Part shown: positions 19,147-51,932 of the stretch, piece after piece | Position numbering within the stretch: the first letter of the stretch is position 1 | How the letters are laid out: every line of letters starts with the position of its first letter | Virus record (IMG/VR): IMGVR_UViG_3300028177_000001 | Span: 186,001-250,000 of that record | DNA length: 64,000 nucleotides | Strand: one strand, 5' to 3' | Position numbers and translations under genes: made by a program | Notes under the pieces: generated by a model | Databases searched by the model: none | What the model was told of the DNA's origin: nothing | The model's input: the letters and a program-made list of their open reading frames with translations, nothing else

Positions 19147-19171
19147 GGGGAGGACTACCCTTTCCGAACTC

Positions 19172-20997: not shown

Positions 20998-21050
20998 TAC
21001 ACCTCCGAGACTTGATTACGTCTCAAAGGTGCGGTGGGAACCCCTTGCCC

Positions 21051-35911: not shown

Positions 35912-36487
35912 TTAGGCGAGCCGCAGGTAGGAAGTCGGGGTCAGCTGGAAGCTACGCTTGGTGCCGTCCAGGAGGAACCGCTGTGCCTCCTGGGCGATGT
36001 GCCCCCCCACGATGCTGTAGAAGGGGAGAAGCACCCCGTCCTCGCAGGTCGGAACCCCGTCGTTGGCCTCCTGGTCTGCCGAGAAGTGCTCGGTCCAGAT
36101 GACCCGAGCAAAGTCACCTGTGGCGGCCAGACACCCGTGCAGGCAGGGGATGCCGTGCTCAATAGCGAACCCCTGGATGATGAGGCGGGCCTCGATGTTG
36201 TCGGTGCAGTCGATGAGCAGGTCGGCGTCGCCGAGCAGCTGCAAGGCGTTGTCCGACGTGAGTCGATGCGGAATCACCTCGCACTTCCGCTTCCACTGAG
36301 CCTGTAGACTCTGGGCCGTCGCCTGCGCCTTGTTCCGCCCCCGCGCCATCTGCGGGTACTCCTGGGCCTGCGTGTTCTTCATCTCGACCTTGTCGAAGTC
36401 GATCAGCTTCAGGGTCGCAACCCAGTTCCGGGCGTTGTGTACAGTGGGGGAACCGATAGCTCCGAGTCCAACAACAGTGACGCGCAT
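35912..36487 (-). CDS. ThiF/MoeB-family E1-like adenylyltransferase
   Basis: [29 protein letters not shown], candidate catalytic Cys in GVPTCEDG; no Zn-binding CxxC pairs. Confidence 0.88.
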
Positions 36488-36566
36488 AGGGTCTCCTCCT
36501 ATGAGGGATTACGGCCTCCGGTGTCTCGGGGAACCCTCGGTAGTTAGGAAATATCTCAGAGCCGGT

Positions 36567-37826
36567 ATGCGGCCCTCACCCCAGAAAGTAGCAGCCCGGT
36601 ATCTTCGGGCCCGTGAATGGGGGAGCCAGGAGGCTCTGGACGACTACCTACGGGAACACCCCAGGGCGATCCCCGAGAAGCACTCCGTTCGTGAACCGGC
36701 AGAGGAAACGACGGCTCCGTCTGCTAAGTCTGCACCTGATGGGTTCACCCTTCCGGACAAAGACGTCCCCGTCAAGTTTGAGATGGGCACCATCGAGGAA
36801 TATGAGGACGACCCCTCAGAGCCCGAGGGCTACCGACTTGTCTCCTCAAAGCCCCTCTTCAAGAGTGAGAAGGCGGCGCTGAAACACATGGGGCTGAAGC
36901 TTCCCTCCATGGACAAGGTCGCGGAGGCTATGGGGGTAGACGCCTTCCCCGGAAAGGTGTCCTCGGAAGTCGTTACGCGGCGCTGGTTTGGCAAGCCGGT
37001 CCTGAGTATTGTCACGCAGGGTCCCGGAATCGAAAGTCACGTGCGCTTTGTAGGGAAAGACGAGGACGGCGACACCTACATCAAGAACCAGACTTTCATC
37101 TTGAAGCCTGAGGCTCACGGCGGAGGGATCGGCACCAAGGCTCTCTACACCCAAGTGCAACAAGCGCGGAAAGCTGGGGTCTCCTACATCAAGACCAGCG
37201 CGGGCGGACCCCCAGACATGAACGGCTACTACACGTGGCCTCGCCTGGGCTACGACGGATTGCTCTCGAGCGTGAACAAGGACGAAGCCTACGAGGACAC
37301 CTCAGTCCCCGAGGACGACCCCAATCGATGGAAGAGCAGAGACATCCCTTCTATCGAGGAAGACATCAAAGCCGCCGTCAAGAAGGGTGACCTCCCCAAG
37401 GGAGCCGAGAAAGTGGAGACCGTTCGGCAGCTCATGGATCTGGAGGGAGGGTCTGCCTGGTGGAAGAAGAACGGCCGAGCGTTCTCGGCTACCTTCGACC
37501 TGGAGTCCGACGACTCGGTAGATGCGCTGGAGGACTACATCGAGGCTACAGCAGCGAAGCTGGGGGTCAGCCCCCAGGAGTGGATGGACATGAGCCCAGA
37601 CGAAATCCGAGCCTCAAAGAAGAAGTCCCCTTCCCCGAAGCGGGTCGCGAGCCTGTTCCTGGCAGCGAAGCGGCGCAAGAAGAAGGACGACGAAGACGAG
37701 GAGGACGGAAAGGGCGACCAGTCCGACCTGGATGAGTCCGACGAGGACATCCTGGATAGCGTCTGGAAGAAGCGGCGCGACAAGAAGCGCCCCTACAAGC
37801 CGTCGCGGTTCCTCAAGAGGAAGTAG
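36567..37826 (+). CDS. peptide-tagged protein with GNAT-like domain
   Basis: PSPQKVAARYL; AHGGGIGTKAL ... GYYTWPRLGYD; second tag PSPKRVASLFL. Confidence 0.75.
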   Translation: MRPSPQKVAARYLRAREWGSQEALDDYLREHPRAIPEKHSVREPAEETTAPSAKSAPDGFTLPDKDVPVKFEMGTIEEYEDDPSEPEGYRLVSSKPLFKSEKAALKHMGLKLPSMDKVAEAMGVDAFPGKVSSEVVTRRWFGKPVLSIVTQGPGIESHVRFVGKDEDGDTYIKNQTFILKPEAHGGGIGTKALYTQVQQARKAGVSYIKTSAGGPPDMNGYYTWPRLGYDGLLSSVNKDEAYEDTSVPEDDPNRWKSRDIPSIEEDIKAAVKKGDLPKGAEKVETVRQLMDLEGGSAWWKKNGRAFSATFDLESDDSVDALEDYIEATAAKLGVSPQEWMDMSPDEIRASKKKSPSPKRVASLFLAAKRRKKKDDEDEEDGKGDQSDLDESDEDILDSVWKKRRDKKRPYKPSRFLKRK

Positions 37827-37834
37827 GCAGCCTC

Positions 37835-38104
37835 TCAGTCGTCCTCGGCGATCCAAGAGGCTACGATCTCCTGGGCTTTGGCGTAGAATGGGGCGAACTC
37901 TGCGTCGTCAGTGTCGAACTGGAAGAAGTCGTCTTCGGGCTCGAACCACATCTTCTCGTGGTCGGCGAGCAGAGGGTAGCGGTCAAGCTCGTCATCGAAC
38001 AAGAGCGCGGCCAGGATGTTGACTGTCGCGTCCGGCGTGAGGGCCTGACCTTCGTGGGAGGCCCTCCTAAGGATCTGAAGCACCTGCGGGCGGAAGTCAA
38101 ACAT
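37835..38104 (-). CDS. hypothetical protein
   Basis: TGATG overlap with the upstream ORF. Confidence 0.55.
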   Translation of the reverse strand: MFDFRPQVLQILRRASHEGQALTPDATVNILAALLFDDELDRYPLLADHEKMWFEPEDDFFQFDTDDAEFAPFYAKAQEIVASWIAEDD

Positions 38105-38591
38105 CAGTCGTCCCGACTTAGGGAATTGAAGAAGTCAGTGAACCTCTGGGTCAGTCTCCGAGAGGTTCCGGTCTGCCGCCAGGCCTCCCGCACACTGACA
38201 CCCAAGGACACGTCCAACACCCAGTAGGCGGCGATGGAGACAACAATCCAGTACTCGGGGGGCACAATGCTCACGGTTCTCTCAGTCGTAGTTCCAGACG
38301 TTGTCGTTGTGGCGGGTCTTGGCGGGGAAGTCGAGGGTCTCGGGGTCGTCCCCGGCACGGAGACGCTCGAGGGCGATGCGCTCCTTCGCACGGAAGAAGC
38401 GGAAGCCAGTGACCTCCCAGGGACGGACATCGTAGGGGTAGTCCTGGCGGGCGGTCACCTTGCGGCGGTGGTTGGTCTTCACGGCTAACTCCTGGTTAGG
38501 GGGTTAGCCGAAGCCCTCGGGGTTGCTGGTCATGGGTCACTCTCCTACAAGAGAGTTACGCCGGAGGTAGCCGGAGGGAACCCTCTTCTTT

Positions 38592-39281
38592 TCAGTATTC
38601 GTCCGAGGGGCTGGTTCCGCCGTGGGGGCACCAGTCGTGGGGGCAGGGCTCCCCCTCTTGACCGTACTTGGCAGGGCAGCCAGACTCCGCGCCGCAGGCA
38701 CAGTCGGGGCACCAGCCCCCGTAGGAGGGCTCCGGGTTGACCCCGCACTCCGTGCACTTGGTCAGGTCGCCTCTTGCGTTGACCCGGTCATTTTCCCAGG
38801 TCAGCTGCCAGCGGACTTCGTTGAGCGCAGCCTCGGGCGTGGGGCCCTGACCCTTGACGGTCTCCGAGACACGGTGAAAGAGCCAGTGGTGTACCGGCTG
38901 GCCGTCCTCTTCCCAGGAGGTGCTCGATGCGACTTCCCACCCCAGGGCGGTGATGTCATAGGGGAGGTGCGGCTTAGAGGGCAGGGTGTGGTGTTCCCGC
39001 GTGCGGTCCAGGTAGCGGGCGCGTTCCTCGTCGGAGGGGCCACTCATACTCATAGAGACGGTCTGGGGGCGCATCGCTTCAGCAAGCTGCGCCCGCACCT
39101 TCGGGTCCTTGAGAGCCACCGCGATCATCTCGTCGCGACAGAGGACGCACCAGGCAGTTGCGTTCTGGTCTAAGAAGACCTCAACTTCGCCGTGGGTCTG
39201 GCAGATGATCTTCACAGTGTTGCCTCTCGGGTGTTCGGCAAGTCCCCTTCTCGCCCGGAGCCTCCGCACTGAGTGCAGCAT
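38592..39281 (-). CDS. Cys-rich hypothetical protein (true start probably internal GTG)
   Basis: CQTH, WCVLC, CTEC, CPDC motifs. Confidence 0.55.
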   Translation of the reverse strand: MLHSVRRLRARRGLAEHPRGNTVKIICQTHGEVEVFLDQNATAWCVLCRDEMIAVALKDPKVRAQLAEAMRPQTVSMSMSGPSDEERARYLDRTREHHTLPSKPHLPYDITALGWEVASSTSWEEDGQPVHHWLFHRVSETVKGQGPTPEAALNEVRWQLTWENDRVNARGDLTKCTECGVNPEPSYGGWCPDCACGAESGCPAKYGQEGEPCPHDWCPHGGTSPSDEY

Positions 39282-39423
39282 ACGGGAATGCTACCCTCTC
39301 GGATGGCATTCCCCCTGCACTTTCGGCAGACGGGCCTCGGGTCGGTCCGGAGCGTGCGCTCGCACCTGTACCGGACGCAAGGAGCCCCGTCGGCGGGGTG
39401 GCCGTTGGGGCAGGAGGAGGCCA

Positions 39424-39639
39424 TCAGTAGTCGACGCGGGCGCGGCAAGCGCGGCGAGAAGCCTTCTTGCGAGCGTCGGGGACCACGGTGCGAATGGCAC
39501 GCCAGCCGTTCAGGCCGGTGAGGGGCAAGCCCTTGGCGAAGTGCTCGGCGCGGTCGATGCCAGCCTGGGCAGCAACACCCCGGAGGGCGTTGTCGGCCTG
39601 GGCACCCTTGCGGCGATTACGGCGGATCTTGCGGGCCAT
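39424..39639 (-). CDS. small basic phage protein
   Basis: Promoter motif plus AGGAAGGAG RBS; ends DARKKASRRACR. Confidence 0.7.
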   Translation of the reverse strand: MARKIRRNRRKGAQADNALRGVAAQAGIDRAEHFAKGLPLTGLNGWRAIRTVVPDARKKASRRACRARVDY

Positions 39640-39693
39640 GAGAGTCTCCTTCCTTTCGAACTCTATTACGTCCGAGACACCGCAGGGGAACCC

Positions 39694-40227
39694 CTACACA
39701 CCCAACGCACTCCGCTGCGCTGGTGTAAGGGACGCGAGAGTCTCTGTTCGGATGATCTCCTCGACGAGGTCTACGCGGTGACCGACCACCGTAGCGTGCT
39801 CCCTGGCGTCACTGGAGTAGGTGCACTTCCGGTGGTAGATGATCTCCTCTCCGTTCGGGTCCCAGGAGCCGTCGTCGGCCAGGCGCTTCACTCGGAAGGC
39901 GGTGCCGCCACCGTAGCCTGCGTCCCGCCCGTAGAGTCCGGGGTCGCTGGCGGGCTCGGGCTTGACCGAGACCACGATGAACTTCGCAGCCGCTCGCGAA
40001 GGGTCTACGGAACTCAGGTCCGTGGTCTGGGTGGTGGTTCGGGTCCACCCGTCCTTCTCCTCCTTGAGGCCCCACTGCATCAGACCCCCTCTTCCCAGAT
40101 AGATAGGAGACGGGATAAGCACCAGCCTCCCGTCTTTGTACTGGGTGCTGTGGTGGCAGTGGGGGAAGATGCTTCCCAGAATGATGTCTCCGAGGGCTTC
40201 CATGGGGGCTCCGGGGTCTGCCTTCAT
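39694..40227 (-). CDS. hypothetical protein
   Basis: ATG embedded in the promoter TAATG. Confidence 0.6.
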   Translation of the reverse strand: MKADPGAPMEALGDIILGSIFPHCHHSTQYKDGRLVLIPSPIYLGRGGLMQWGLKEEKDGWTRTTTQTTDLSSVDPSRAAAKFIVVSVKPEPASDPGLYGRDAGYGGGTAFRVKRLADDGSWDPNGEEIIYHRKCTYSSDAREHATVVGHRVDLVEEIIRTETLASLTPAQRSALGV

Positions 40228-40263
40228 TACGCCCGAGACGCCGCAGGGAACCCCCCACAGAAA

Positions 40264-40584
40264 CTAAGACATCGACTCCACGACGGCCTGGTACTCGGGG
40301 GAGTTCTTCCGGATCATGTCTTCGGCGATGTCCTTGACGAAGTTGACCTCAGCCATGATGCCGTCCTCGTCATCGTTCTGCATGCTGAGCTCGAGCCAGT
40401 ACATCCAGTTCTGGTAGTTGCCCGGCTTGCCTCCGAACCCGAGGTTCTCTGCCGCGATCTTCAGCAACAGCATGTACTGCGGATCCTTGCGGGCCAGAGC
40501 CCCGAAGGACCAGATGTTCCGCACCTTCTTCAGTCTGGAGGTCTTGGTGTACGCGGCGACGACGCGGGCGACGGATGGGGCCAT
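40264..40584 (-). CDS. peptide-tag-bearing hypothetical protein
   Basis: MAPSVARVVAAY. Confidence 0.7.
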   Translation of the reverse strand: MAPSVARVVAAYTKTSRLKKVRNIWSFGALARKDPQYMLLLKIAAENLGFGGKPGNYQNWMYWLELSMQNDDEDGIMAEVNFVKDIAEDMIRKNSPEYQAVVESMS

Positions 40585-40636
40585 GTTGATTCCGGGTTTC
40601 GACTAAACAGGTGCCTGGGGGGTGGCTATAGGCAGT

Positions 40637-41107
40637 CTACTGCACGGCTCGAGCCAGTTCTCCTATCGCGGTGTCCCCCCACAATTTCCCTTCTGTGTGG
40701 CTTGGGAGGGCTAACCAGTCAAGGCTCTTGTGCCACACAATGTGGTGGTCGCGGCGATAGCCGAGCCGTCGAGCGATCTTCTCCAGCCTCTCGGTGATAT
40801 CGTCTCCCGGATGTGCGTCCTCAGCCAGACCTTCTGCCTGCCATGCCTCGCAACATCTACGAAGGAGCTTAGCAACCTCGAGGGCCTCCTTCTCGGTCTC
40901 GCAGGAGAAGACAGGCCAGTGGGGCGTCCGATTGCCCCTGTCCATGGAGTGTACACAGACCTCGTAGCCGTCGCACACACAAGGGCGGCGGCACTGATTC
41001 GCCGTGACCCCGAGGTGGGGGAAGTCTTGTACTGTCTCGGCCACCTTGTGGATGTCTTTGAACGCCTGGCCGTCGTAGCGCCAGGCTCTGTGGAATTTCT
41101 CAGACAT
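40637..41107 (-). CDS. hypothetical protein
   Basis: In-operon overlap. Confidence 0.55.
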   Translation of the reverse strand: MSEKFHRAWRYDGQAFKDIHKVAETVQDFPHLGVTANQCRRPCVCDGYEVCVHSMDRGNRTPHWPVFSCETEKEALEVAKLLRRCCEAWQAEGLAEDAHPGDDITERLEKIARRLGYRRDHHIVWHKSLDWLALPSHTEGKLWGDTAIGELARAVQ

Positions 41108-41666
41108 CGTCGTGGTCTGTCATCATGTTCACGAACAGGACGCCCTGGCCGATCGCGTCGGTCAAGGCGGTGTGGTCGTGTCGGGGTGCCCCGTTGAACC
41201 AGCGCTTCGGCATGTTCCGCTTCGAGGCACCCTTGAAGTCGCCGCCGAGCTTGGTCCAAGCCAGGGTCTTGAGGTCCAGGCCCTGCATGCCAAAGGGCGA
41301 CTTGCCTACAAACTTCATCATGTACCAGTACACGAACATGAAGTCGAAGGTCACCGGGTAGCCAATGACCACCGCCTTGCCTGGTAGGGCTCGAACCCAC
41401 TGGCTGAACTGGCTCATCCCGGCCACAGGGTGCTGTTGGTTCTGGCTCAGGTGGGCCCAAGCCTCGGGCTGGTTGGCCCACCACTTCATTGTGTCTGGGT
41501 CCTGGCTCGCACCTTCGAGGGGGAGCAGGTTCACCTCAAACGTGGCGACCGGCTTGCGATCCCCAAGTACGAACGCAGCCGCCCCCAGGGAGAGCATAGA
41601 GTACTCTCCGGGGATTGGCCCGTCCGCCTCGATGTCGACGCTGATGTAGATTTCGGGCTTGGCCAT
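41100..41666 (-). CDS. DEDDh 3'-5' exo(ribo)nuclease, Rv2179c-like
   Basis: ISVDIEADG, FDFMF, GLDLKT, HTALTDA. Confidence 0.88.
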   Translation of the reverse strand: MAKPEIYISVDIEADGPIPGEYSMLSLGAAAFVLGDRKPVATFEVNLLPLEGASQDPDTMKWWANQPEAWAHLSQNQQHPVAGMSQFSQWVRALPGKAVVIGYPVTFDFMFVYWYMMKFVGKSPFGMQGLDLKTLAWTKLGGDFKGASKRNMPKRWFNGAPRHDHTALTDAIGQGVLFVNMMTDHDDV

Positions 41667-42733
41667 CAGGGGCAGGCCTCCTTGACCTTCGCCACGGCTG
41701 CTGTGGATCCGGTCAGGTCAAACGTGACCACCTGGGGGGTCTGGCGGAAGGGATTGAGCTCCACAATCCAGGTTTCCCCGTCGTGGGCCTGGAAGGTGTT
41801 CAGCATGGTCTCGGGGTTCCGGAAGAAGAGACTCTTGCTGTCCTTCCCTGCGGTCCCTGTGACGTCGATGATGGGACCGTCGCCGAAGCGGTACTTGCCG
41901 GTCACTGAGTTGTAGCGGTAGTTGCTCTGGAGCATCGCCTGCGCGTTGATGTAAACATCGAGATCTCCTCCCAGGCACCGGAACACCAGCCGAGCGTTCT
42001 TGATGTCGCCGATGTAGGGGATGCCGTCCAGGCCCTCCAGCACAGCCGTGGCTTCCTTCTTGCGGGTCAGCGGGTTCTCGCTGTTGCTTCCCGCCCAGCG
42101 TCCCCCCAGCCACAGAGCCTTCTGCGCGTCATGGCTGTCCCGGGTGATCCGAAGGGCCCGCTTGAACTGGCCGTAGTCCTCGTCATCCTCTCCGATCTCG
42201 GCCAGGATACTCTCGGCCAGGTCCAGGGACTCCCCCGCCCGGTCGAACTCCCAGCCGTCCCACCAAGAACTGGTCATGGTCAGTTCCAGGTTGAACTTGC
42301 TCACCTTCTTGTCCCGGATTTCCTTTAGGCGAGCGGCCTCCGCATCCTCCGCTGCGTCGGTGTTGATGCACCAGGAGCCGTCCTCCAGACGAAGCTTGAC
42401 CGTGAACGACTTGTCGTCTGAACCTTCCCAGGATCGGATGATCCTCACGGTGGCCTCATTCCCGTCCTCGCTGAGGACCGCCGACTGCACGCTCATGGAG
42501 TCGGGAGTGTACAGAGTCTGGACGGCGGCGGCGAAGCCGTCCAGGGCGAAGACCTTCTCGTACTCTTCCTGGATGTCCTCTTTGGACGAGGCTGCCTGGT
42601 CGTCCGCGCAGACCATGTCCCACCTGGCCGCGATCCCCGCCGGAGTGATATCCTCGACGGTCTCGTATTCCACGGCCAGTGCGCTCACCTTTGATTCAGT
42701 TGAGCAGGCGAGCAAGAGGGAGAAGATCAGCAT
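41666..42733 (-). CDS. lipoprotein with a C-terminal VasI/EvfG-like domain
   Basis: Lipobox LLAC; LVFRC...LDVYIN...YRFG...TFDLTG...AC pattern. Confidence 0.65.
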   Translation of the reverse strand: MLIFSLLLACSTESKVSALAVEYETVEDITPAGIAARWDMVCADDQAASSKEDIQEEYEKVFALDGFAAAVQTLYTPDSMSVQSAVLSEDGNEATVRIIRSWEGSDDKSFTVKLRLEDGSWCINTDAAEDAEAARLKEIRDKKVSKFNLELTMTSSWWDGWEFDRAGESLDLAESILAEIGEDDEDYGQFKRALRITRDSHDAQKALWLGGRWAGSNSENPLTRKKEATAVLEGLDGIPYIGDIKNARLVFRCLGGDLDVYINAQAMLQSNYRYNSVTGKYRFGDGPIIDVTGTAGKDSKSLFFRNPETMLNTFQAHDGETWIVELNPFRQTPQVVTFDLTGSTAAVAKVKEACP

Positions 42734-43155
42734 GGGATAGTCCGGGTAGAGGGTTCAGTTGAAAGCTGTAGGCCGAAAAGGATGCCGGCATTCAGAGGCA
42801 CGTCCAGGGGGAAGTCTTCTACCGCCAGAGGACGCCCGAGAGCCTTGGCAAGGCACCCCAGGTGGGCCGTACCCCGTCCGAAGTCTGCGGCCTGCCAGAC
42901 GGGCTTGTGGACCATGTGCATGGAGTCGTTGTTCTGAGCCCCGCAGTAGATGCAATCGAACATCCCCCGGACGTTCTCCCTGCCCTGCCCCTGCGCCCAC
43001 TCCACCGCGTCCTTCTGCCGAGAAAACTCCCGAGCCTCGGGGTGGGGCTCCACCTCAGGATCGAAGGGGAGGCACTCCACTCGGATGACGTCGTCTCCAA
43101 GATGGTTGAAGATGCGCCAGTGGTCCTTGACCCGAATGATGAGGGTGTACTTCAT
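42727..43155 (-). CDS. hypothetical protein with CxxC...HxxC
   Basis: CIYC, MVHKPVW, HLGCL. Confidence 0.6.
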   Translation of the reverse strand: MKYTLIIRVKDHWRIFNHLGDDVIRVECLPFDPEVEPHPEAREFSRQKDAVEWAQGQGRENVRGMFDCIYCGAQNNDSMHMVHKPVWQAADFGRGTAHLGCLAKALGRPLAVEDFPLDVPLNAGILFGLQLSTEPSTRTIPC

Positions 43156-44010
43156 GGGATCCTGGCGGTGACCAATCGGTACTGGTCAACGGTTCGGTTG
43201 TAGGGGGCCAACATCCGAGGTTTGAACTGAGCTCCACAGCTTACGGCTGCGCACTTCAGTACCTGTCCCGGGTCGAACCTTGCTCGGAACTGCGACGGAT
43301 GGCCCGCCAGCTCTGCCGGCTCTGTCGCGGGGTGCTCGTACCGAGGCATGTAGTTGGTCGCCCGGCAAGCGGGACAGTACCACAGGTAGCCCAGAGTGGT
43401 CAGTCCAAGGGGGGTCTGAAGGGGCACCTTCCAAGTCGTGATGACCACAGCCCCCTGGCCCATGAGACCCTGGTACGTCGGGTCGTCCGGATCGGCCCAC
43501 GTCGCGCGAACCCTCGCCTCATTGGAGGTGTCTCGCCCCCGTGCCCAGATTCCTGTCAACACTTGGCCACATCCTTCGCTCGGGCCTGCGCCTCTCTCAA
43601 CGGGAGGAGAGGCCAAGGTGGGTCCACATGAGAGATGTAGGTGTCGCAGTTCAAGAGAGACCGCTTCTCAAGGGGGTGGTCCGGCTCGCAAGCCATTCGG
43701 AACAGGGCGCAGGTGATGTTCTTCTTGCACCGAGTGGCGATACACGCAGCAGGGACGGCAGGCTCCGGGTCGGGCTCGGAGATGGTTCCAACCATACAGG
43801 GGTCCTCGCCCTTCTCGTCTGCGGCCACGACCGCAGCACTTGCCGTGAGCATCCGGATCGAGTGGGGTGCTGTGTCAACGCTGGGTGTGAAGCAAGCCCT
43901 CCCAGGCTCTGCGCCGCAGAAGGGACACGCGAAGCGGAGGATCACCTCAGACCACAGCCCTCGGGGCCAGGTATTCGTGATCATGATCCGAAGGCGATTC
44001 GTCGATTCCA

Positions 44011-44607
44011 TCAGCGCTTCCGGTTCCCCTTCAGCGGGTGCCTCGGGACCGCAGCCAGCGTTGCCAGCAGAGCGTCGTTCTTGTCGAGAATCATCCCGGG
44101 CAGGTTGGCCGAGACTTTGTGGTACTCTGGGCTGCGTAGCCACTGGGCGTAAGGCATGTCGCCTCGGGTGCGGTTGCACTTCTTGCATGCTGCTACGAGG
44201 TTCGCCTCAATCGAAGGACCTCCCTCCTCCCACAGAACCAGGTGGTCCACGGTCAGGGGGACGTCGTTCGCAGCACAATAGCGACAGCGGAAATGGTCCC
44301 TGCGGTACACTGCCCACGAGACGTTCTGGCTGATCTGGCGTGCGCTCTTCCGCACCAACGCCTTGCCGACTTCTCCGTGTTCGTCCTTGACGAGGGCCAT
44401 CACCTCGACTCGGTCGGTCTGCTGGATGAACGTCTGCCACTCGGCGAGGTCCATCTCGAGGACACCCGTGTCCTCCCACCAATGGCCGTCCAGTGTCTCT
44501 CCGGGAAGGGGTGCGGCGATGAAGTTGCCGGAGCCGTCCTGGTAGATCACTCCAGCGATCTGGATCTTGGTGCCGATGTCGGTGATTTCGAGATCAGAGA
44601 GCTTCAT
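44011..44607 (-). CDS. HNH endonuclease with N-terminal extension
   Basis: RDHFRCRYCA, TVDHLVLWEEGG, NLVAACKKCNRTRG. Confidence 0.88.
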   Translation of the reverse strand: MKLSDLEITDIGTKIQIAGVIYQDGSGNFIAAPLPGETLDGHWWEDTGVLEMDLAEWQTFIQQTDRVEVMALVKDEHGEVGKALVRKSARQISQNVSWAVYRRDHFRCRYCAANDVPLTVDHLVLWEEGGPSIEANLVAACKKCNRTRGDMPYAQWLRSPEYHKVSANLPGMILDKNDALLATLAAVPRHPLKGNRKR

Positions 44608-44875
44608 GAGGTGGTTCCTGGAATGTGGGTCTGGGCGCTCTGGCGTGGCTGATTGACCCCGGTGGTGTCGTGGAGCAGGATCGCCCCTTCTTTGCACTGA
44701 ATGCGAGAGGTCCAACACTGAGGGCATCCCTGTGCGTGGGCCAGAAAGCTCTGCACGTTGCGATCGCCTACGCTGAGGCTGACACCACCTTCGAGGTCAT
44801 AGACCTTGCCCCCTTGCGCCATCCGCTCGGTGACCTTCTTCGGAGGGACGGTGCCTGCTACTGGCTCGTTCGTGG

Positions 44876-45517
44876 TCATGATTCTTCCGGTTCTGGCTGT
44901 TGGGCGATGATCTCTTCGGCGGAGGGCAGACCGAGAGCCTTGTGGCAGTCGATGCAGACCTTACAGCCGTCATCGGTGGTCCAGGCCACCTTGAGGTGGG
45001 GCGGGTCGTCTTCCTCGACCCCGTTGGGCCAAGTGGCGTAGCCCTGCCCTCCGGAGACCTTGCCGCCGAATAAGAGGGTGCGCTCGTGGGCGCAGACCCC
45101 CTGGGGACCGCCCCTGTTCTTCAGAACCATGACTTGCCCAGAGATCTTCTCGAGCAAGATTCGTTCTGCGGAGTACCTTCGGGCCGGTTCCAGCTTCTCG
45201 AGAGACTCCCCGTCCTTTTCGCGTAGCCGGAGGATCCTACCTTCTTCGTTCATGGGGTCTTCTCTCGGTCGAAACCAGGGCCAGCTGGGAAAGTCGCCCC
45301 GGACGTCACGACCTTGAGAGGCGATATGTCCGGGAGAGGAGTGGGCGAGGTAGACCACGTCCACGAACTGGTGTGGCATCAGGTAGTTCAAGCCCGCGAC
45401 CTCTTCCTGGACCACCGTGGTGAATTCCCCCAAGCCCCCGAAGCCAGCTTCTAAGCCAACGACTCGCCGGTTCGGGTCGCACTTCTGTAGTGCCTCGATA
45501 AGTTCGAAGACCTTCAC
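44876..45517 (-). CDS. hypothetical protein (possibly two fused small genes)
   Basis: MKVFELIEAL phage-like start; internal GAAGACCCC-ATG NEEG restart. Confidence 0.5.
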   Translation of the reverse strand: MKVFELIEALQKCDPNRRVVGLEAGFGGLGEFTTVVQEEVAGLNYLMPHQFVDVVYLAHSSPGHIASQGRDVRGDFPSWPWFRPREDPMNEEGRILRLREKDGESLEKLEPARRYSAERILLEKISGQVMVLKNRGGPQGVCAHERTLLFGGKVSGGQGYATWPNGVEEDDPPHLKVAWTTDDGCKVCIDCHKALGLPSAEEIIAQQPEPEES

Positions 45518-45520
45518 GAC

Positions 45521-45955
45521 CTACTCTCCCGAGGGGCGGGAGAGCGCGTGCTGCGCCCAGAACTGGGCTGCCTCTTCAGCCGCCTCGGGCGGCAGGGTCG
45601 GGTCCGTGATCTCACGGGGAGCCAGGGGGCCGCCGTAGGCAGTGAACACCGTGACCACGTCGTCCTCGCGCTTCCCGATCACCGTCATCAGACGGGTGGG
45701 TCGCTCCGCTCGGTCGCAGAGACGGCTGAGGTTCGTACGCTCGCCGCGCAGGGCCCACTCGACCTCCTCGCTCGGGACCGGTTCGTCGCCGACGATGGGC
45801 CCGTGAATGCCCGACATCAGGTCACCGCACTCGCCACCCAGGGTGACGGTCGTCACGATGAAGGTGTCCCCGTCTGCCGCTTCGAAGAGACCCCGGATGA
45901 CCGCCTCGTGCGAGGGGTCAATGCCGTGGTCAGCGTGGAGGATGTTCATGTCCAT
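45521..45955 (-). CDS. conserved hypothetical phage protein (TAYGGPLAPRE)
   Basis: Recognisable motif ...FWAQHAL. Confidence 0.7.
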   Translation of the reverse strand: MDMNILHADHGIDPSHEAVIRGLFEAADGDTFIVTTVTLGGECGDLMSGIHGPIVGDEPVPSEEVEWALRGERTNLSRLCDRAERPTRLMTVIGKREDDVVTVFTAYGGPLAPREITDPTLPPEAAEEAAQFWAQHALSRPSGE

Positions 45956-46023
45956 GGAAGGGCTCCTACGAAGGGTGGTGATGAGGTTACGTCTGGGGGA
46001 GGGTTCCCCTCCCCCGACGCAGT

Positions 46024-46452
46024 TCAGTCTTGCGTGGCCCAGGCGAGCAGGTCCTGGAAGGACTGCTCGTCGCCGACGATGGCCTGCTCACGAGGGGTCA
46101 GCCCAGCGAAGCCGGAGATGTCGGCGAAGGAGTACCGCACGAGTCCGCGCACGATGTCATCCCGACTCCGACCCAGGGGGGTCTTCGGACGGATGAACAG
46201 CCGAGCGTAGGTGATCTCGTCGGTCGGGCCGAAGCGGTCCACGACGAAGTCGGCCAGGTTGGCCTGCACTGCCTCGATGCCCGGGATGTCACCGTTGGCC
46301 ATCGCCTCCACAGCCATCTGCTTGAGGTCGCCGTCGGTGGCGTCGTAGGGAACGGGGTCCGGGAGGAACCCGTTGGTGCCGTTGTATGTGACGTTGAGCC
46401 GTGCCGCGTTGGCAGGCAGGTTGACTGCGGGAACCATGAGTACTTCGTCCAT
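46024..46452 (-). CDS. bacterial ubiquitin-like (beta-grasp) protein with C-terminal extension
   Basis: RLNVTYNG...PDPVPYDATDGD...DFVVDRF...LFIRPKTPLG followed by 48 further residues; adjacent to JAB. Confidence 0.6.
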   Translation of the reverse strand: MDEVLMVPAVNLPANAARLNVTYNGTNGFLPDPVPYDATDGDLKQMAVEAMANGDIPGIEAVQANLADFVVDRFGPTDEITYARLFIRPKTPLGRSRDDIVRGLVRYSFADISGFAGLTPREQAIVGDEQSFQDLLAWATQD

Positions 46453-46529
46453 GATGGACCTCCTCTCGTTGAACAGAGATACGGTGTAGAAACTTCGCGA
46501 ACCCCCTTCCTGGGGGCTGCGCTGGGGGT

Positions 46530-46901
46530 TTACCGGGAACGGGCCCTCAGCTCTTTGATACTGCGGTCGGACAAGCGGAACAGACCCTGCACCGAGACGT
46601 ACAGGTTGTTCTGGATATCCCAGCGGAGGTAAGACACGTCGGTGAACGTGACCACGGGCCACCAGTACAACCGACCCAGTCCTTGCTCCAGAGCGCGGAA
46701 CGTGGTCAGGTCCGTTCCCGAAGGGGACGCAGGCCCATCCCAGGGATGCGTGTGTGCCAGACCCCCGATGGCCAGACGGTTCTCCCACATGACTTCCCAG
46801 AGGCCTCGGCTGTCGGGCAGCGAGCCTCCAGTGCGTCCTGCGGGCTCGTGCCAGTGAAAGGGCTCGCCGAGCTTGTCGAAGACGAGTGCGGTTTCGATCA
46901 T
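46530..46901 (-). CDS. JAB/MPN metallopeptidase
   Basis: N-terminal E (MIETA), AHTHPW...PSGTD (HxH-x7-S-x2-D). Confidence 0.85.
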   Translation of the reverse strand: MIETALVFDKLGEPFHWHEPAGRTGGSLPDSRGLWEVMWENRLAIGGLAHTHPWDGPASPSGTDLTTFRALEQGLGRLYWWPVVTFTDVSYLRWDIQNNLYVSVQGLFRLSDRSIKELRARSR

Positions 46902-46902
46902 G

Positions 46903-47286
46903 TCAGTACAACCTGTAGACGACCTGGGAGAGAGCTTGGTCCGCCTCTTCCCCTCGGTCGCTCTGGAGATAGGCGAGGATGGCGGCCACGAGGCGGTTTG
47001 AAGTCCCCTTCCCGGTCCACGGGCCGATTCCCTCAGGGTAGCCTCCCTCCGTCATGGAGGAAATCCTCACGATGTTGGCGACATCGTAGCCCGCCTCTTT
47101 CAGGCGATGTGCCACATGGTTGCCCCTGAGACCCGGCAGGCGGTGGTCCAGCATGACCCCGTCGAAGGACAGGATGTCGTCGATGGGAACCTCGTCCCAG
47201 CGCTCGGCCACCACGTACTCATGACCCTCGGGCCAGTACTTCATGTCCAGCAGCCACGGCTGGTCTTCGATAATCAGAATCTTCAT
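46903..47286 (-). CDS. atypical receiver (REC) domain protein
   Basis: ILIIED, VMLDHRLPG, ISS. Confidence 0.7.
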   Translation of the reverse strand: MKILIIEDQPWLLDMKYWPEGHEYVVAERWDEVPIDDILSFDGVMLDHRLPGLRGNHVAHRLKEAGYDVANIVRISSMTEGGYPEGIGPWTGKGTSNRLVAAILAYLQSDRGEEADQALSQVVYRLY

Positions 47287-47567
47287 ACGTGCCCTCGGCT
47301 CTGTGAGTGTTACGTCCTCGCAGGGCTCGGGGAACCCTCTGTGTCAGAGACCTGACTCCCACAGAATACGAAGAACACCCTCTTCTGTCAGTCGATACTG
47401 CTTGCGCTCCCTGGCGGGGTGGTCCGATCGCTCCGCGTAGACAGGACCCTGGGGAAAGAAAGCCGTGCAGAGCCTTCCAGCAACGCGGGCATCCCTGGGA
47501 GAGAGCAAGCGCCACTCGTACATGACCAGAGCGTTCATCACCCGCAACTGCGCTGGGGAGAGCTTCT

Positions 47568-48140
47568 TCATGGGGTTAGTCCCGCCAGTTCGTTCATCAG
47601 ATTCAATCGAGCCTGGTCCTCGAGGCGGTCAGCCCAGAAGTCGCTGATGTAGATCCTCTCGGCGCCCAGAACATCTTGTAGGAATCGAGCTCGGCCGATC
47701 TTGTAGAGTTCAGCCGGAGCTACCGGGGCCCACTCAGCTGCAACCTGAGCCGCGTATTCACGGTAGCGGTCGGGGTTCTGCCCGAGGATGGCCATGTCGC
47801 AGTCCAGGAACAGGGCGGTGTCCCCCGCTTCATCCTGGTGTTGGCCGTGACTGGCCGTCTTGTGGATCAGGTCTTCAGCGAAGTCCAGGTCCATCCCGGG
47901 GAACCAGCGGGGAGCTTCCCTTCTCATCAGCGCTGCGCTGGCCTCCTCGTTGGTCGCGGCTCCCACCACGTAGATCGCGTCGTGCCAGAGGATTGCCGCG
48001 AAGACCTCATCCCGCTTCTCGATGAGGTGGAAGCAGAAGCGATAGTGGGCCAGGACCTCCTCCACGTGTGCGAAGGTGTGGTAGTGCCGACCAGGGGTCG
48101 AATACCACACCTGGAGGTCGTCCTTGAGGTTGGGGTTCAC
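47568..48140 (-). CDS. HD-superfamily phosphohydrolase (COG4339-like)
   Basis: YSTPGRHYHT, ILWHDAIY, NEEASA, FLDCDMAIL. Confidence 0.88.
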   Translation of the reverse strand: MNPNLKDDLQVWYSTPGRHYHTFAHVEEVLAHYRFCFHLIEKRDEVFAAILWHDAIYVVGAATNEEASAALMRREAPRWFPGMDLDFAEDLIHKTASHGQHQDEAGDTALFLDCDMAILGQNPDRYREYAAQVAAEWAPVAPAELYKIGRARFLQDVLGAERIYISDFWADRLEDQARLNLMNELAGLTP

Positions 48141-48505
48141 AGGACCCTCGCGGTGACAGTGACCTGAACGCACTGCACTACCACGTCCGCAATTGGGCTC
48201 TTGCTCCAGAACGCCAGGGCTTCCTTCTTCGAGGGGAATCTCTTACCTTGGGTGAGGTCTTGAGAGACCTCCCAGGTGTGGCTGGGTCCGGGTCCGTGGT
48301 TGTCCTCCCAGCCGACCTTCTCCCAGCACAGGTAGCGCTCGGCAGCGTACTTTCGCATGAACTGGCGGTGGCCTCCGATGGAACCTGCGTGCAGGGAGTC
48401 CATCCACGCCTTGTTCCCCTCGCGGTTGTTGGCCTTGATTTGAAGGACCACGTAGCTGCGAATCGTAGGCTTGAGGGGCTGCTCTTCAAGTACGGGGAAG
48501 CTCAT
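48137..48505 (-). CDS. hypothetical protein
   Basis: TGATG overlap with the AAA gene stop. Confidence 0.5.
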   Translation of the reverse strand: MSFPVLEEQPLKPTIRSYVVLQIKANNREGNKAWMDSLHAGSIGGHRQFMRKYAAERYLCWEKVGWEDNHGPGPSHTWEVSQDLTQGKRFPSKKEALAFWSKSPIADVVVQCVQVTVTARVL

Positions 48506-49776
48506 CAGTAGTGCTCGGGTGTAGGCACGGCTTCGTCGTTCGAAGACACGGAAGAGCGGTTGGACAGATACTCCGCACAACGGTCCCCGGAGTGGAGTTC
48601 CCGCTGCTTGCGAACTCGACCAACCTCAACCTCGTACACGTCCTCGCCCACCACCCCGGTGGACATAAGAACCTCACGCACATCCGCCGGAGCGAAGCCC
48701 ATCATGTCCTTGAGGAGGAGCTCATGGTCGAGCCCTACACCGAACTTCGCCGCGTAGTGTGCAATGACCAGCCGGAGGTAGGGCTCCTCCGGCTCCTTGA
48801 CTTCCAGGACCTCGTCGAACCGTCCCGGACGCAGCAACGCGGGGTCCAGCTGCTTGATGCTGTTGACCGTACCTACGACCGTGATGCGACCTTTGAGGAC
48901 GTGGTCAGCCTGACCCAGGACCTCCAGGAGCCCCTCCATCGCGTTCATGTTCCGGTCGATGTCGTCGAGCAGAATCACATCCGGACGAAGCATGTCGATA
49001 AACTGGAGGAGGGTGCTGCTGCTCCCGTTCCCGCTGGTGGCCTTGCCGGACATCTGCAAGAGCCGTCCCCCCAGACCCTCGGCCAGCTTGTGTGCCAGTG
49101 TGGTCTTCCCGGTGCCCGGAGGCCCGTAGAGCAGCACCTTGCGAGCATGCCCCGCCTCCAGGAAGCGGCGTGTTCTCTTGAGCATAGACTGGAGAGCCGA
49201 CTCGACCCCGTTGTCCACGGAGACGTAGTCCCCAGAACCGGTCACCGGAGTGACGTCCAGGAAGGTGTCGTCCCAGACGCGCTTCCGCACCAGCTGGAGC
49301 CCGCAGTCCTTCTCCACTGCCCACACCAGGGTGGCCACTGCCTGCTGCACTGCCTCGATAGTCCCCGGCTTGATGAAGATGTTGTAGACCCAGGTGCGGT
49401 GCTCCCCCTCGGAGATGTGTAGGTAGAGGACCTGGCCTCCGGGCAGCTGAGCCTCAACCAGTTGCTCGTCCCCCGACTGGAACACCTTCTTGGTCGTGGT
49501 GTGCTCAGCGTACCGGAGGCACAATCGGTCGATGTGGCTTGACGAACCAATCGGCTTCAAGCCCCGCTGGTTGATCTCGTCCCGGATCAACCCACCGATG
49601 GCGGTGTTCTCAAGCTTCTTGGCGTCGCGGAACTGCTGGACAGCGTGCGAACTCTGGATGACCCGGTTGACCAGCTTCAGCGCGGGGATGTCAGCTCGGT
49701 CTCCTCCCCACGTACTGGTGAGACTGGTGACCAACTCCCACAGAGGATTCGCCGCTTTGGGTGCCTCGTCCTTCAC
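48505..49776 (-). CDS. classical AAA+ ATPase (BCS1/FtsH-like module)
   Basis: LLYGPPGTGKT, ILLDDID, TVN, LDPALLRPGRFD. Confidence 0.92.
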   Translation of the reverse strand: MKDEAPKAANPLWELVTSLTSTWGGDRADIPALKLVNRVIQSSHAVQQFRDAKKLENTAIGGLIRDEINQRGLKPIGSSSHIDRLCLRYAEHTTTKKVFQSGDEQLVEAQLPGGQVLYLHISEGEHRTWVYNIFIKPGTIEAVQQAVATLVWAVEKDCGLQLVRKRVWDDTFLDVTPVTGSGDYVSVDNGVESALQSMLKRTRRFLEAGHARKVLLYGPPGTGKTTLAHKLAEGLGGRLLQMSGKATSGNGSSSTLLQFIDMLRPDVILLDDIDRNMNAMEGLLEVLGQADHVLKGRITVVGTVNSIKQLDPALLRPGRFDEVLEVKEPEEPYLRLVIAHYAAKFGVGLDHELLLKDMMGFAPADVREVLMSTGVVGEDVYEVEVGRVRKQRELHSGDRCAEYLSNRSSVSSNDEAVPTPEHY

Positions 49777-50064
49777 AGGTGCCTACTCCTTGCCGCCTGG
49801 TGTGCGGGTGTACCCTACGTCTCGCAGAAAACACTCCCCGACTGGGCTGCCCAGCCACTGGATCACCGTAGCGGCGACCTCGCACTGCTCGTCCGTTGCG
49901 CTCTTCGGAGCGAGACCGCCGTCCCCGTTCATGAGGTAGTCGACGATGCTGCGAGGATGCCTGTTCTCGTGCTCCCACAGACGTGCAAACTTGCGTTCCT
50001 GCGGGTTCTGGTCGAGCCGGTGTCGGTTCCGCCCCTGGTGTCGCTTGCTCATGCTTCCTCCCAC

Positions 50065-51096
50065 TCAGTCGTCGTAGTCATCGTCGTAATCGCGACCGGG
50101 GTCGCCGTCAACGTGGCGCCACACCACCAGCTTGTTCTGGTCCATGGCCCAGCCGATGACGCCAGGCAACGACTCCAGGGTGAAGTAGGTGTCGCCCTTC
50201 GTGCCTCGGTGATCGTCCAGGCAGACCCCGGCGTCGACGATGCGCAGCGTGCGCTTGTCTACCACACACTCCAACCGGCGCTGTCGGAAGCGATACTGCA
50301 CCACTTTCTCGTTCCGGTTGCGGCTATCCCTTGCGTCCAGTAGCTCGGCGCCAGAGAGGGCCAGAGCAGCCCTTGCAGCGGCATCGAAGTCCTGGGCGGC
50401 CAGAGCCCGAAGCCCCGGACCCGTGGTGGCGTCCTTCAACGCCTGGTTCAGCTTCTCCTGCCTGTCCAGAAGAGCAGCGGCGGCGGCGCGTTCTGCCTCC
50501 GTGCGTGCTTCGTCCTCCAGACGGAGACGCTCCACCTCGCGGGCACGTTCTTCAGCGCGCTCGCGGCCCCAGGAGATCCACTGGAAGGCGAGATCCAGAG
50601 CGGGTGTTACTCCCTTGACGTGTGCGATGCTGTCCTTGCGGTCCTGGAAGGCGATTAGAGCTTCGTCCTCGGGGCCTTCGGGCCAGAGGACCTGCAGGTA
50701 GATGAGACGCCCCTCGCGGTCTCGTAGAACTTCGGCGCGGGAGAACCTCTCCAGACCCAGTTCCACGCAGTACACAGGCTCAGTCTGTTCAATCAACTTG
50801 TCTGGGTCCGGGTCTACGTGAGCCCCGTCCTGAATGAACCGATCGCCCACGAGGTAGCCGCGCAGGACCTCCTTGCCGGCGTCCTCGGCGAACTCGGGAT
50901 CCGGGTCTGCCAGGTCTCGTCCGGCCAGACGCATGCCCCGTCCTGCGGTAGCCTCGAAGGTCCACCACCCGTGCTCGGCCGGGAGGCGTCCTTGTAGACG
51001 CCAGGTTCGGGTCAGGGAGTGCACCTGGCGACCCCCCGCATAGGGGAGCACCTGGGTCTGCTTGCCCTCGGGGGCCAGTAGGTCCTTCCAGCTCAT
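50065..51096 (-). CDS. conserved hypothetical protein, candidate E2-like partner of the ThiF/JAB/Ubl set
   Basis: C-terminal RLECVVDKRTLRIVDAGVCL...FTLESLPGVI domain; the association with Ubl operons is from memory. Confidence 0.55.
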   Translation of the reverse strand: MSWKDLLAPEGKQTQVLPYAGGRQVHSLTRTWRLQGRLPAEHGWWTFEATAGRGMRLAGRDLADPDPEFAEDAGKEVLRGYLVGDRFIQDGAHVDPDPDKLIEQTEPVYCVELGLERFSRAEVLRDREGRLIYLQVLWPEGPEDEALIAFQDRKDSIAHVKGVTPALDLAFQWISWGRERAEERAREVERLRLEDEARTEAERAAAAALLDRQEKLNQALKDATTGPGLRALAAQDFDAAARAALALSGAELLDARDSRNRNEKVVQYRFRQRRLECVVDKRTLRIVDAGVCLDDHRGTKGDTYFTLESLPGVIGWAMDQNKLVVWRHVDGDPGRDYDDDYDD

Positions 51097-51476: not shown

Positions 51477-51500
51477 TAGACGGAGCTCCTTTAGCTCTGG

Positions 51501-51932
51501 TTACGTCTCTCCTGGCTTCCGGGAACCCTCCTCCAGAAGGGGCGCCAGTTCTTCACGGAGGAGGCGCAGGGCTTCCTCTCGCCTGCCTACGACCATGTGC
51601 ATGCCGATCTTGTCGAGCAGGTTGAAGTGGATCGGCTCCCAGTGCGGTCCGGGAAGCGCGTCCACGTCTGCCTGGGAGGGGGTTGCACCTGACGGCATGA
51701 CGGCCCAGTGGGTCACGTAGCTCGTGCATTCGAAGGACTTGCCGGAGCCGGGACGGTGCTGGTACCAGCGCTTCGTGAACGAGTTGTACCAGCACATCCG
51801 AGCGAAGCCCTGGGCGTACCTCTGGGTGTTCTCCAGGGGAATGTCCGCCACGTTCCGAGGCGCCATGGTCGCCAGGTAGTAGTTGCTCTGAGAGGGAGCG
51901 TGGTCGCGGGAAGCAATCCAGTCAGGGGACAT
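51501..51932 (-). CDS. hypothetical protein with DUF551-like pattern
   Basis: DWIASRDHAP ... VTHWAVMP; the stop codon is the TAA of a promoter motif. Confidence 0.55.
   Translation of the reverse strand: MSPDWIASRDHAPSQSNYYLATMAPRNVADIPLENTQRYAQGFARMCWYNSFTKRWYQHRPGSGKSFECTSYVTHWAVMPSGATPSQADVDALPGPHWEPIHFNLLDKIGMHMVVGRREEALRLLREELAPLLEEGSRKPGET

Follow-up and report, generated by a model that had tools for sequence, protein, structure and literature searches.

A conserved five-gene cassette of jumbo phages encoding a ubiquitin-like protein, an E1-like enzyme, a JAB peptidase and two partner proteins

Do genes that are spread over more than 20 kb of a phage genome belong to one ubiquitin-like system, and what might such a system do? 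This question is raised by a 64,000-nucleotide stretch of DNA (in the following, the window), which is part of the 288,255-bp IMG/VR contig IMGVR_UViG_3300028177_000001 of a jumbo phage. In a preliminary description of the window, a minimal E1, a JAB peptidase, a beta-grasp-like ubiquitin-like protein (Ubl) and a conserved cysteine-bearing protein, considered a candidate E2, were proposed to form a phage-encoded conjugation set. That these open reading frames (ORFs) are borne by a phage is supported by their location on the 288-kb contig.

The comparison with related loci showed that the E1, the JAB peptidase, the Ubl and the cysteine-bearing protein (p343, 343 amino acids), together with a protein possessing a von Willebrand factor A (vWA) domain, form one cassette with the gene order VWA, p343, JAB, Ubl, E1. 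It is very probable that the five genes constitute one functional unit centred on Ubl, E1 and JAB. The reading favoured here, which is held with moderate confidence, is that this unit activates the Ubl and transfers it to a protein acceptor.

Co-occurrence and order of the cassette genes

Viral loci were collected by scanning IMG/VR with an alignment of the Ubl family, and a gene was assigned to a locus if its homologue occurred within 10 kb. This yielded 57 loci (56 besides that of the window's contig), almost all of which are located on contigs of 100-618 kb. Homologues of Ubl, JAB and p343 were detected in all 57 loci, the vWA homologue upstream of p343 in 56 and the E1 homologue downstream of Ubl in 54; one of the three loci lacking E1 ends at a contig edge. 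The order and the strand of the genes were identical throughout. A scan of about 185,000 species genomes revealed just 14 further loci, all of them on contigs of metagenome-assembled genomes (MAGs) and none in an isolate. The cassette was carried by all 14, with homologues of E1 in 14, of p343 in 13 and of the vWA protein in 12, and the standard gene order was found in 12. The linkage of the E1, JAB, Ubl and cysteine-bearing ORFs, which had been postulated from the window, is thus borne out by the gene neighbourhoods of their homologues in both the viral and the MAG loci. Independent gene calls on other contigs concur with the cassette. When all ORFs of 52 loci were clustered, no sixth conserved family was obtained; the remaining recurrent clusters were alternative-frame artefacts or mobile HNH genes. 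Two MAG loci showed peculiarities: in L068 the Ubl gene precedes JAB, and in L064 no JAB was found between p343 and Ubl, and the Ubl match runs into the tail.

Among the phages deposited in GenBank, protein searches identified relatives of the cassette solely in the uncultured Virus Rctr197k. In this virus the homologues of JAB, Ubl and E1 lie co-directionally in one string, p343 and a 650-amino-acid vWA protein are encoded just upstream, and the cassette adjoins large tRNA arrays.

A split across the genome as a feature of the system's design is not supported. In 9 of 46 complete loci the cassette spans at most 4.6 kb, and in 20 at most 5.5 kb; the compact forms are contiguous (4.0-4.6 kb), with genes that overlap or abut. 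In the window it spans 20.75 kb, with 3.6, 3.2 and 9.5 kb of other genes between its members, because genes were inserted, among them those for an HNH endonuclease and an AAA+ ATPase. The comparison of the loci indicates that the dispersed layout is a derived state and that the ancestral state was a compact operon. Gaps of more than 300 nucleotides occur between p343 and JAB in 29 of 51 loci and between Ubl and E1 in 29 of 47, but between JAB and Ubl in only 9 of 51 loci; the median JAB-Ubl gap across the 51 loci is 12 nucleotides. That this junction is seldom interrupted suggests selection for keeping JAB and Ubl coupled. The insertions themselves were mostly observed at the p343/JAB and Ubl/E1 junctions (L012, L018, L031, L037, L044, L053 and others). 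The HNH endonuclease encoded inside the cassette of the window (44011-44727, minus strand) has relatives in 16 of the 57 viral loci, where they lie within or near the cassette and not always at the same place, which suggests that the HNH genes are mobile, homing-type insertions that repeatedly broke up the operon.

Two further genes located between the cassette members of the window were considered as components and rejected. A vWA and an AAA+ protein had both been named as possible partners; the former is indeed a member of the cassette, whereas membership of the latter is not supported. This classic-clade AAA+ ATPase (48505-49776, minus strand; PAN/Mpa/CDC48-like, NCBIfam E = 2e-17), is encoded between p343 and JAB. 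The 70 other cassette loci compared contain no homologue of it, and close relatives were likewise missing from other viral contigs; no domain was assigned to its N-terminal approximately 190 amino acids. Likewise, the supposed REC component (46903-47286, minus strand), a small protein encoded directly upstream of JAB, has no homologue in any of these 70 loci. Its likeness to receiver domains is weak (Pfam E = 0.033; response regulators in the PDB, E = 0.004).

Across 47 loci, the five proteins diverge in a correlated manner when compared pairwise (Mantel p = 0.001, r = 0.50-0.74). This fits co-inheritance, yet a common phage phylogeny would by itself give the same result. The G+C content of the cassette loci ranges from 32% to 74%, and with its fixed order across such different phages the cassette appears to behave as a core gene set, unlike an accessory counter-defence gene. 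This bears on the idea that the phage proteins disturb the Ubl-based defences of bacteria (CBASS Cap2/Cap3, Bil, Bub), for instance through decoy conjugation or the removal of host conjugates. Bacterial Ubl pathways do function in anti-phage immunity, and when PADLOC defence models were applied, the E1 was the sole match, hitting E1-E2 (Cap2) models at 1e-14. The E1 is, however, less close to Cap2 than to MoeB, deconjugation would need no more than a lone JAB, and the cassette looks vertically inherited and core-like in its fixed order, correlated divergence and range of G+C content, not like a patchy accessory element. As an explanation of its own, counter-defence is therefore regarded as improbable; it overlaps with the favoured reading insofar as it is one possible purpose of conjugation.

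The ubiquitin-like protein and the JAB peptidase

The ORF at 46024-46452 on the minus strand, which contains the motif RPKTPLG as described previously, starts with ATG at 46452, and GGAGG is located 7 nucleotides upstream. The motif ends at Gly94 (codon 46173-46171). Residues 1-94 (46171..46452) represent the core, a predicted beta-grasp domain ending with RPKTPLG, and the remaining 48 amino acids with the stop codon (46024..46170) represent an unconserved C-terminal tail of the precursor, which is predicted to be removed. AlphaFold2, run with an alignment of 86 sequences, yielded a model with a predicted local distance difference test (pLDDT) score of 92-97 for residues 11-90 and of only 58-71 for the tail. 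The model has a beta-beta-alpha-beta-beta topology (strands 16-23 and 26-29, helix 40-53, strands 69-74 and 83-89), and its final strand leads into the conserved glycine. This confident model predicts a beta-grasp fold, as had been supposed from the sequence of the window. Searches of its sequence against Pfam and the PDB gave no match.

An exhaustive profile search in 1.84 billion representatives revealed 321 clusters of this family at 50% identity, 235 of them with E ≤ 1e-10. The conserved core ends with RPKTP[F/L]G, and the terminal glycine is retained in 146 of 150 family representatives. In these 146 the preceding residue is mostly F (120) or Y (18) and rarely L or V (4 each); an aromatic residue followed by Gly predominates, and none of them has a Gly-Gly end. 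Behind the glycine follow no residues in 14 representatives, 1-5 in 72, 6-20 in 7 and more than 20 in 53, the longest tail exceeding 60 amino acids. These tails, present in more than 90% of the representatives, are hypervariable: among 52 long ones no mutual similarity was found except in one pair, and Pfam revealed nothing meaningful in 10 long-tailed proteins. Fusions of Ubl with JAB, E1, p343 or the vWA protein were not found in the 150 representatives. Tails behind a conserved glycine imply that trimming would be needed before adenylation. The C-terminus hence shows the pattern expected of a modifier whose carboxylate is exposed by a protease, and the JAB gene is located immediately upstream.

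This JAB/JAMM metallopeptidase (46530-46901, minus strand) is a stand-alone protein of 123 amino acids. It matched Prok-JAB (Pfam E = 3e-5) with a score of 24.3 bits, just below the gathering cutoff of 25. Nevertheless, its metal and catalytic motif is complete, since E3, H50-x-H52, S61 and D64, with the spacing HxH-x8-S-x2-D, are conserved in 49-52 homologues. The core aligns best, although weakly, with Rpn11 (E = 0.35). The description of a JAB peptidase encoded directly upstream of the beta-grasp ORF was accordingly correct. JAB is predicted to cleave the Ubl precursor behind Gly94, and possibly it also acts as a deconjugase.

A beta-grasp protein and a JAB peptidase could also form an assembly or release module without any conjugation, in which the beta-grasp protein is chaperone-like or a cleavable carrier, JAB frees the Ubl and its tail, and the E1-like protein acts on another substrate. 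Such a role has been proposed for tail assembly protein I of lambda together with the JAB of protein K, and ubiquitin-fusion proteins offer a further parallel. Phage Ubl-JAB pairs without conjugation do exist in tail-assembly gene clusters (PMC1779556), the JAB of the window weakly matches a PHROG annotated as tail protein (E = 5e-4), and the Ubl tails are hypervariable and at times long. On the other hand, 14 of the 150 Ubl proteins are tail-less, JAB is not fused to NlpC/P60, and the cassette is located in a non-structural region (topoisomerase, deoxynucleoside kinase, tRNAs). Above all, an E1 with invariant catalytic residues beside Ubl in 54 of the 57 viral loci is hard to explain without activation of the C-terminus. 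Such a module is hence considered quite unlikely.

The E1-like adenylyltransferase

The last gene of the cassette (35912-36487, minus strand) encodes a protein of 191 amino acids of the ThiF/MoeB type (Pfam ThiF, E = 4.4e-30). As stated in the preliminary description, it is a minimal ThiF-type E1 with a cysteine in the motif GVPTC and without zinc motifs. This Cys148 aligns with the crossover-loop cysteine of MoeB from E. coli ('ALTCVEAGV'). In 48 E1 proteins encoded by cassettes, G7, G9 and G12 (GxGxxG), D30, K53, D93, D96, R101 and C148 are invariant, and D30, K53, D96 and R101 align with the ATP/Mg residues D62, K86, D130 and R135 of MoeB. The genomic link of the Ubl family to this E1 (54 of 57 viral and all 14 MAG loci) is as close as stated above. 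The protein consists of a single domain and is shortened at both ends in comparison to MoeB: its start corresponds to residue 32 of MoeB, and the alignment stops at residue 213 of 249. When the family profile was compared with solved structures, MoeB was closest (2e-16), followed by ThiF, Uba4 and UBA5.

This relationship raises the possibility of a sulfur-carrier relay, in which the trimmed and adenylated Ubl would be converted to a C-terminal thiocarboxylate, with a small molecule, a base in tRNA/RNA or a base in DNA as the recipient of its sulfur. Beside the closeness to MoeB, ThiF and Uba4, the invariant loop cysteine, which matches that of ThiF and MoeB, speaks for this relay. Moreover, sulfur carriers too are trimmed by JAB peptidases, of which Mec+ and QbsD are examples (Iyer et al., 2006; PMC1779556). 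However, the E1 possesses no rhodanese domain. Also, the Ubl ends with an aromatic residue and Gly, whereas known sulfur carriers end with Gly-Gly.

p343 and the vWA protein

The second cassette gene (50065-51096, minus strand) encodes p343, of which more than 853 homologues were found, the closest with 54-69% identity. The AlphaFold2 model (pLDDT 91.9) comprises a beta-rich, OB-like N-domain (residues 14-136), a helix of 60 residues (165-224) and a C-terminal alpha/beta domain. The best Foldseek match was the coiled-coil/OB region of Mpa (E = 0.018, probability 0.91), followed by CSD, HIN and eIF1A. In the C-terminal domain a helix and four strands are followed by a loop with the invariant G290-[I/V]-C292-L293 and by further helices; the extended motif G290-[I/V]-C292-L293-[T/D]-D is located after strands 251-288 and before helices 301-319. 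The ORF is thus rightly described as conserved and cysteine-bearing: C292 is invariant and C277 is conserved to 98%.

The order of elements in this domain and its cysteine motif recall the UBC core, in which the catalytic cysteine is located in the loop behind a four-stranded sheet (G-x-[IV]-C-L-[DS]-like). Nevertheless, the former designation of p343 as candidate E2 could not be maintained. An HPN motif is absent (residues 285-291 read R-I-[IV]-D-A-G-[IV]). None of 68 family members showed an E2, UEV or RWD domain in Pfam, and none was detected in a PDB profile search, in two ESM Atlas searches of the C-terminal domain, or among the best 50 Foldseek matches listed against either the PDB or BFVD. 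Plasmid-borne ThiF operons, which were checked as a source of prokaryotic E2 proteins, contained no annotated E2. It is possible that p343 is a transfer protein, with an E2-like relay through Cys292, or an adaptor protein.

For a sulfur relay, p343 and the vWA protein would have to be regarded as the acceptor machinery. This is consistent with the N-domain of p343, which resembles nucleic-acid-binding OB folds (CSD, eIF1A, HIN), with the conserved C277 and C292, and with the tRNA genes of these phages, four of which are located in the window, besides the large arrays next to the cassette of Rctr197k. In contrast, no sulfur enzyme domain of the kinds discussed below was detected in p343 or in the vWA protein.

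The vWA protein (VWA650, 650 amino acids; 54711-56663, minus strand) is encoded by the first gene of the cassette and consists of an N-terminal region of about 430 amino acids, to which no domain was assigned, and a C-terminal vWA domain with an intact MIDAS motif (metal ion-dependent adhesion site, D-x-S-x-S). Pfam VWA_2 was matched by VWA650 (E = 1.4e-6) and by all 47 family members. The MIDAS residues D443, S445 and S447 (alignment numbering) are invariant, as are C325 and C587. For the N-terminal region, the language model of the ESM Atlas indicated a likeness to TROVE/DUF2828 (score 0.83), which was not confirmed by hidden Markov models: Pfam gave no TROVE match in the 47 members, the PDB profile search gave no Ro60 chain at E ≤ 10, and no Y-RNA family of Rfam was found in the window. 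The resemblance of this region to TROVE/Ro60 is therefore treated as a mere lead.

Proposed function

The following scheme builds on the domain identities, the conserved catalytic residues, the terminal glycine with its variable tails and the gene linkage; its biochemical steps, the kind of acceptor and what p343 and the vWA protein contribute are inferred from these, as is the purpose, be it protein tagging, counter-defence or sulfur relay. The Ubl would be produced as a precursor with a variable C-terminal tail, which the JAB peptidase encoded immediately upstream would cleave off after the conserved aromatic-Gly end (Gly94 in the window). The minimal MoeB-like E1, probably a homodimer, would then use ATP to adenylate the exposed glycine carboxylate, and the Ubl would be loaded onto the loop cysteine Cys148, probably as a thioester. 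From there it would be handed on, with a lysine in a protein of the phage or the host as the most likely acceptor. In this process, p343, with Cys292 as a possible relay, and the vWA/MIDAS protein may serve as partners for transfer or target recognition, and JAB could also undo the modification.

A protein acceptor is favoured over a sulfur relay because no sulfur enzyme is conserved in the module, whereas two large, non-enzymatic-looking partners are, one of them with a vWA domain. Neither a desulfurase nor a rhodanese, PP-loop ATPase, ThiG, MoaE, CysM-like or TtuA partner is conserved with the cassette. This agrees with the earlier observation that sulfur-cofactor genes are absent; none was found among the conserved neighbours or the window proteins scanned, a scan which was not exhaustive. 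The sulfur relay is consequently considered rather unlikely, although less so than counter-defence or a non-conjugating module.

Several observations weigh against the transfer to a protein. No E2 is recognisable in the cassette. By its sequence, the E1 is nearest to the activators of sulfur carriers (MoeB, ThiF, Uba4) and not to conjugating E1 enzymes of the Cap2 type. It lacks the N-terminal helix which bears Arg14 in MoeB, has Ala41 at the position of MoeB Arg73, and lacks the C-terminal zinc-binding region, with no CxxC pair in the sequence. Its competence in adenylation is thus an assumption, although the invariant R20 might compensate for the missing arginine fingers. Furthermore, Foldseek gave nothing significant for the Ubl model (best E = 0.2, TM-scores 0.3-0.46). 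The fold is supported by the topology and by the kind of the top matches, nearly all of which are ubiquitin-fold proteins (FAF1 UBL, Ras-binding domains of PI3K, FERM F1, PB1, Bilbo1-NTD, SUMO, ubiquitin). Finally, none of the RNA runs listed contains the cassette locus. Three metatranscriptomes from a study in which the phage DNA occurs showed zero coverage, while a DNA run covered the whole stretch without differences.

A more far-reaching version of the favoured reading would be that a clade of uncultured jumbo phages possesses its own complete tagging system, which dispenses with a canonical E2 and comprises a new Ubl family (aromatic-Gly end, hypervariable pro-tails), the smallest known E1, p343 with its invariant cysteine as a non-UBC transfer enzyme on a new fold and the vWA/MIDAS protein as substrate receptor, and that the modification of phage or host proteins by this system is essential for infection. 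Bacteria would then harbour a ubiquitin-like conjugation pathway which is encoded by a virus and whose transfer component is not of the UBC type. This version is put forward only tentatively and appears doubtful as a whole.

So far, bacterial Ubl conjugation has been linked to sulfur metabolism or to the defence of hosts against phages (CBASS Cap2/3, Bil, Bub), and the cassette described here sits on the side of the virus, as a fixed five-gene module in dozens of jumbo phages whose hosts differ widely in G+C content. If proteins are conjugated, phages would, like eukaryotic viruses, supply their own tagging machinery. A very small E1 of about 190 amino acids and possibly a non-UBC transfer protein would then be available for mechanistic studies. 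If, instead, sulfur is relayed, the cassette would point to a novel phage-directed thio-modification. In its contiguous forms of about 4 kb the cassette is small enough for synthesis and a direct test.

Promoter-like motif and genomic context

The preliminary description had also reported a shared promoter at the E1 gene and at the REC-JAB operon. A promoter-like motif, GGTTCCC-N14-CGTAAT, is present about 20 nucleotides upstream of the E1 start codon (36508..36535, minus strand) and again (47309..47336, minus strand) upstream of 46903-47286, which precedes JAB and Ubl. A degenerate copy (51500..51527, minus strand) lies upstream of the gene at 51093-51476, which is followed by p343; no copy was found immediately before the vWA gene. 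In the form GGTTCCC-N13/14-CGTAAY the motif occurs 11 times in the window, in comparison to 0.09 expected copies, at 21015, 28886, 36508, 38555, 39665, 40226, 47309, 51500, 54475 and 63574 on the minus strand and at 57196 on the plus strand. Every copy is located 20-30 nucleotides upstream of a gene start and in the orientation of the gene. The reported promoter copies are thus present, but with 11 copies in the window they are not specific to the set; the motif apparently represents a general promoter class of the phage, which permits co-expression. A scan for sigma-70 promoters and terminators gave results not above chance. Since the motif is unlike a sigma-70 promoter, its reader may be a factor or polymerase specific to the phage.

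The window has a G+C content of about 62%, and its genes are tightly packed, the majority of them on the minus strand. The neighbours of the cassette are non-structural and comprise a type IB topoisomerase-like protein, a GHKL ATPase, a deoxynucleoside kinase, an exonuclease and HNH endonucleases. The topoisomerase gene (15943-17391, minus strand) encodes a catalytic core of the eukaryotic type IB (Pfam Topoisom_I, E = 8e-8), and the family recurs near the cassette on another contig (L077, 13880-14288). At 3290-4525 (minus strand) a ROS/MucR-like zinc-finger region is fused to an AAA_5 ATPase (MoxR/dynein-type); MoxR ATPases are often paired with vWA proteins, but this gene is located 50 kb away from the vWA gene. 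In the otherwise minus-strand region around the E1 gene, a plus-strand ORF (36330-37826) with a coding-like G+C content at third codon positions (GC3 = 0.76) diverges from the E1 gene and would overlap its 5' end if the first TTG were used as start. It has no match in Pfam, and the AT skew flips at 36-38 kb of the window.

A near-identity DNA search against 50,697 GenBank phage records gave no match to the window. The window sequence recurs in metagenomes of marine or seawater origin (at least 12 runs, several studies), and the stretch from 45.9 to 51.2 kb was reproduced without differences by one metagenome DNA run. In the record of Rctr197k (KX853510.1; L001) the orthologue of p343 (18285-19307, minus strand) is unannotated, and gp234 was called on the opposite strand instead. 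The vWA orthologue (19235-21226, minus strand) was entered only as a misc_feature. Since p343 of Rctr197k was recovered by tblastn in two pieces, a frameshift is possible.

The literature refers to Rctr197k solely in connection with the phylogeny of its capsid and terminase, which lies near that of PaBG-like jumbo phages. Full-text searches revealed no description of a phage-encoded Ubl/E1/JAB/vWA cassette, and none is mentioned in the survey of jumbo phages by Iyer et al. (2021).

Comparison with known systems

One of the closest known systems is BilABCD of bacteria. Here, a JAB-type deubiquitinase pre-processes the Ubl and thereby exposes the glycine for adenylation by the E1 (bioRxiv 10.1101/2023.09.26.559546). 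As in the phage cassette, the glycine is hidden by an extension, the exposing JAB/JAMM protease is encoded in the same operon, and an adenylating E1 is present. However, BilABCD is a four-gene defence operon (Ubl, E2, JAB and E1), whereas the cassette is a five-gene core module of phages. The E1 of Bil possesses an inactive and an active adenylation domain and a mobile CYS domain, in contrast to the single MoeB-like domain of 191 amino acids with a loop cysteine in the phage protein. Moreover, Bil has a recognisable UBC-type E2, while none is detectable in the cassette, and the vWA protein and p343 have no counterparts in Bil.

The sulfur-carrier systems MoeB/MoaD, ThiF/ThiS, CysO/MoeZ/Mec+ and TtuB/TtuC/TtuD, to which Urm1/Uba4 can be added as a further sulfur relay, contain the closest relatives of the E1 by sequence and a small beta-grasp protein with a C-terminal glycine. 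They share with the cassette a single-domain, presumably homodimeric E1 with a loop cysteine, and some of them a JAB peptidase. Unlike these systems, the cassette has no linked sulfur donor or acceptor, its Ubl ends with F/Y-Gly instead of Gly-Gly, and its E1 has neither zinc motifs nor the arginine-finger helix nor a rhodanese domain. In addition, it contains two large conserved proteins.

Conjugation without a recognisable E2 occurs in the archaeal SAMP/UbaA/HvJAMM1 system and with TtuB of Thermus, in which a MoeB-like E1, a beta-grasp modifier and a JAMM protease cooperate. By analogy, the missing E2 would not speak decisively against protein tagging by the cassette. In contrast to the latter, the SAMP and TtuB systems are cellular, their modifiers end with Gly-Gly, and they contain no counterparts of the vWA protein or p343.

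The tail assembly proteins I (Ubl) and K (JAB and NlpC/P60) of lambda and T1 provide a phage example of a beta-grasp protein whose C-terminal glycine is conserved and which is encoded beside a JAB domain (PMC1779556). This pair belongs to the tail gene cluster, has no E1 and contains JAB as a fusion to NlpC/P60, whereas the cassette encodes an E1, a vWA protein, p343 and a stand-alone JAB among non-structural neighbours.

The pairing of a JAMM protease with a vWA subunit is known from eukaryotic assemblies, namely Rpn11 and Rpn10 in the proteasome lid and BRCC36, MERIT40 and BRE in BRISC/BRCA1-A, with E2-variant domains in BRISC. The cassette has this pairing in common with Rpn11/Rpn10 and BRISC, which is to be read as an analogy; the match of JAB to Rpn11 is weak (E = 0.35). 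Taken together, the logic of Ubl, E1 and JAB is known from these systems, and the Ubl family, the minimal E1, the two partner proteins and the viral setting are new.

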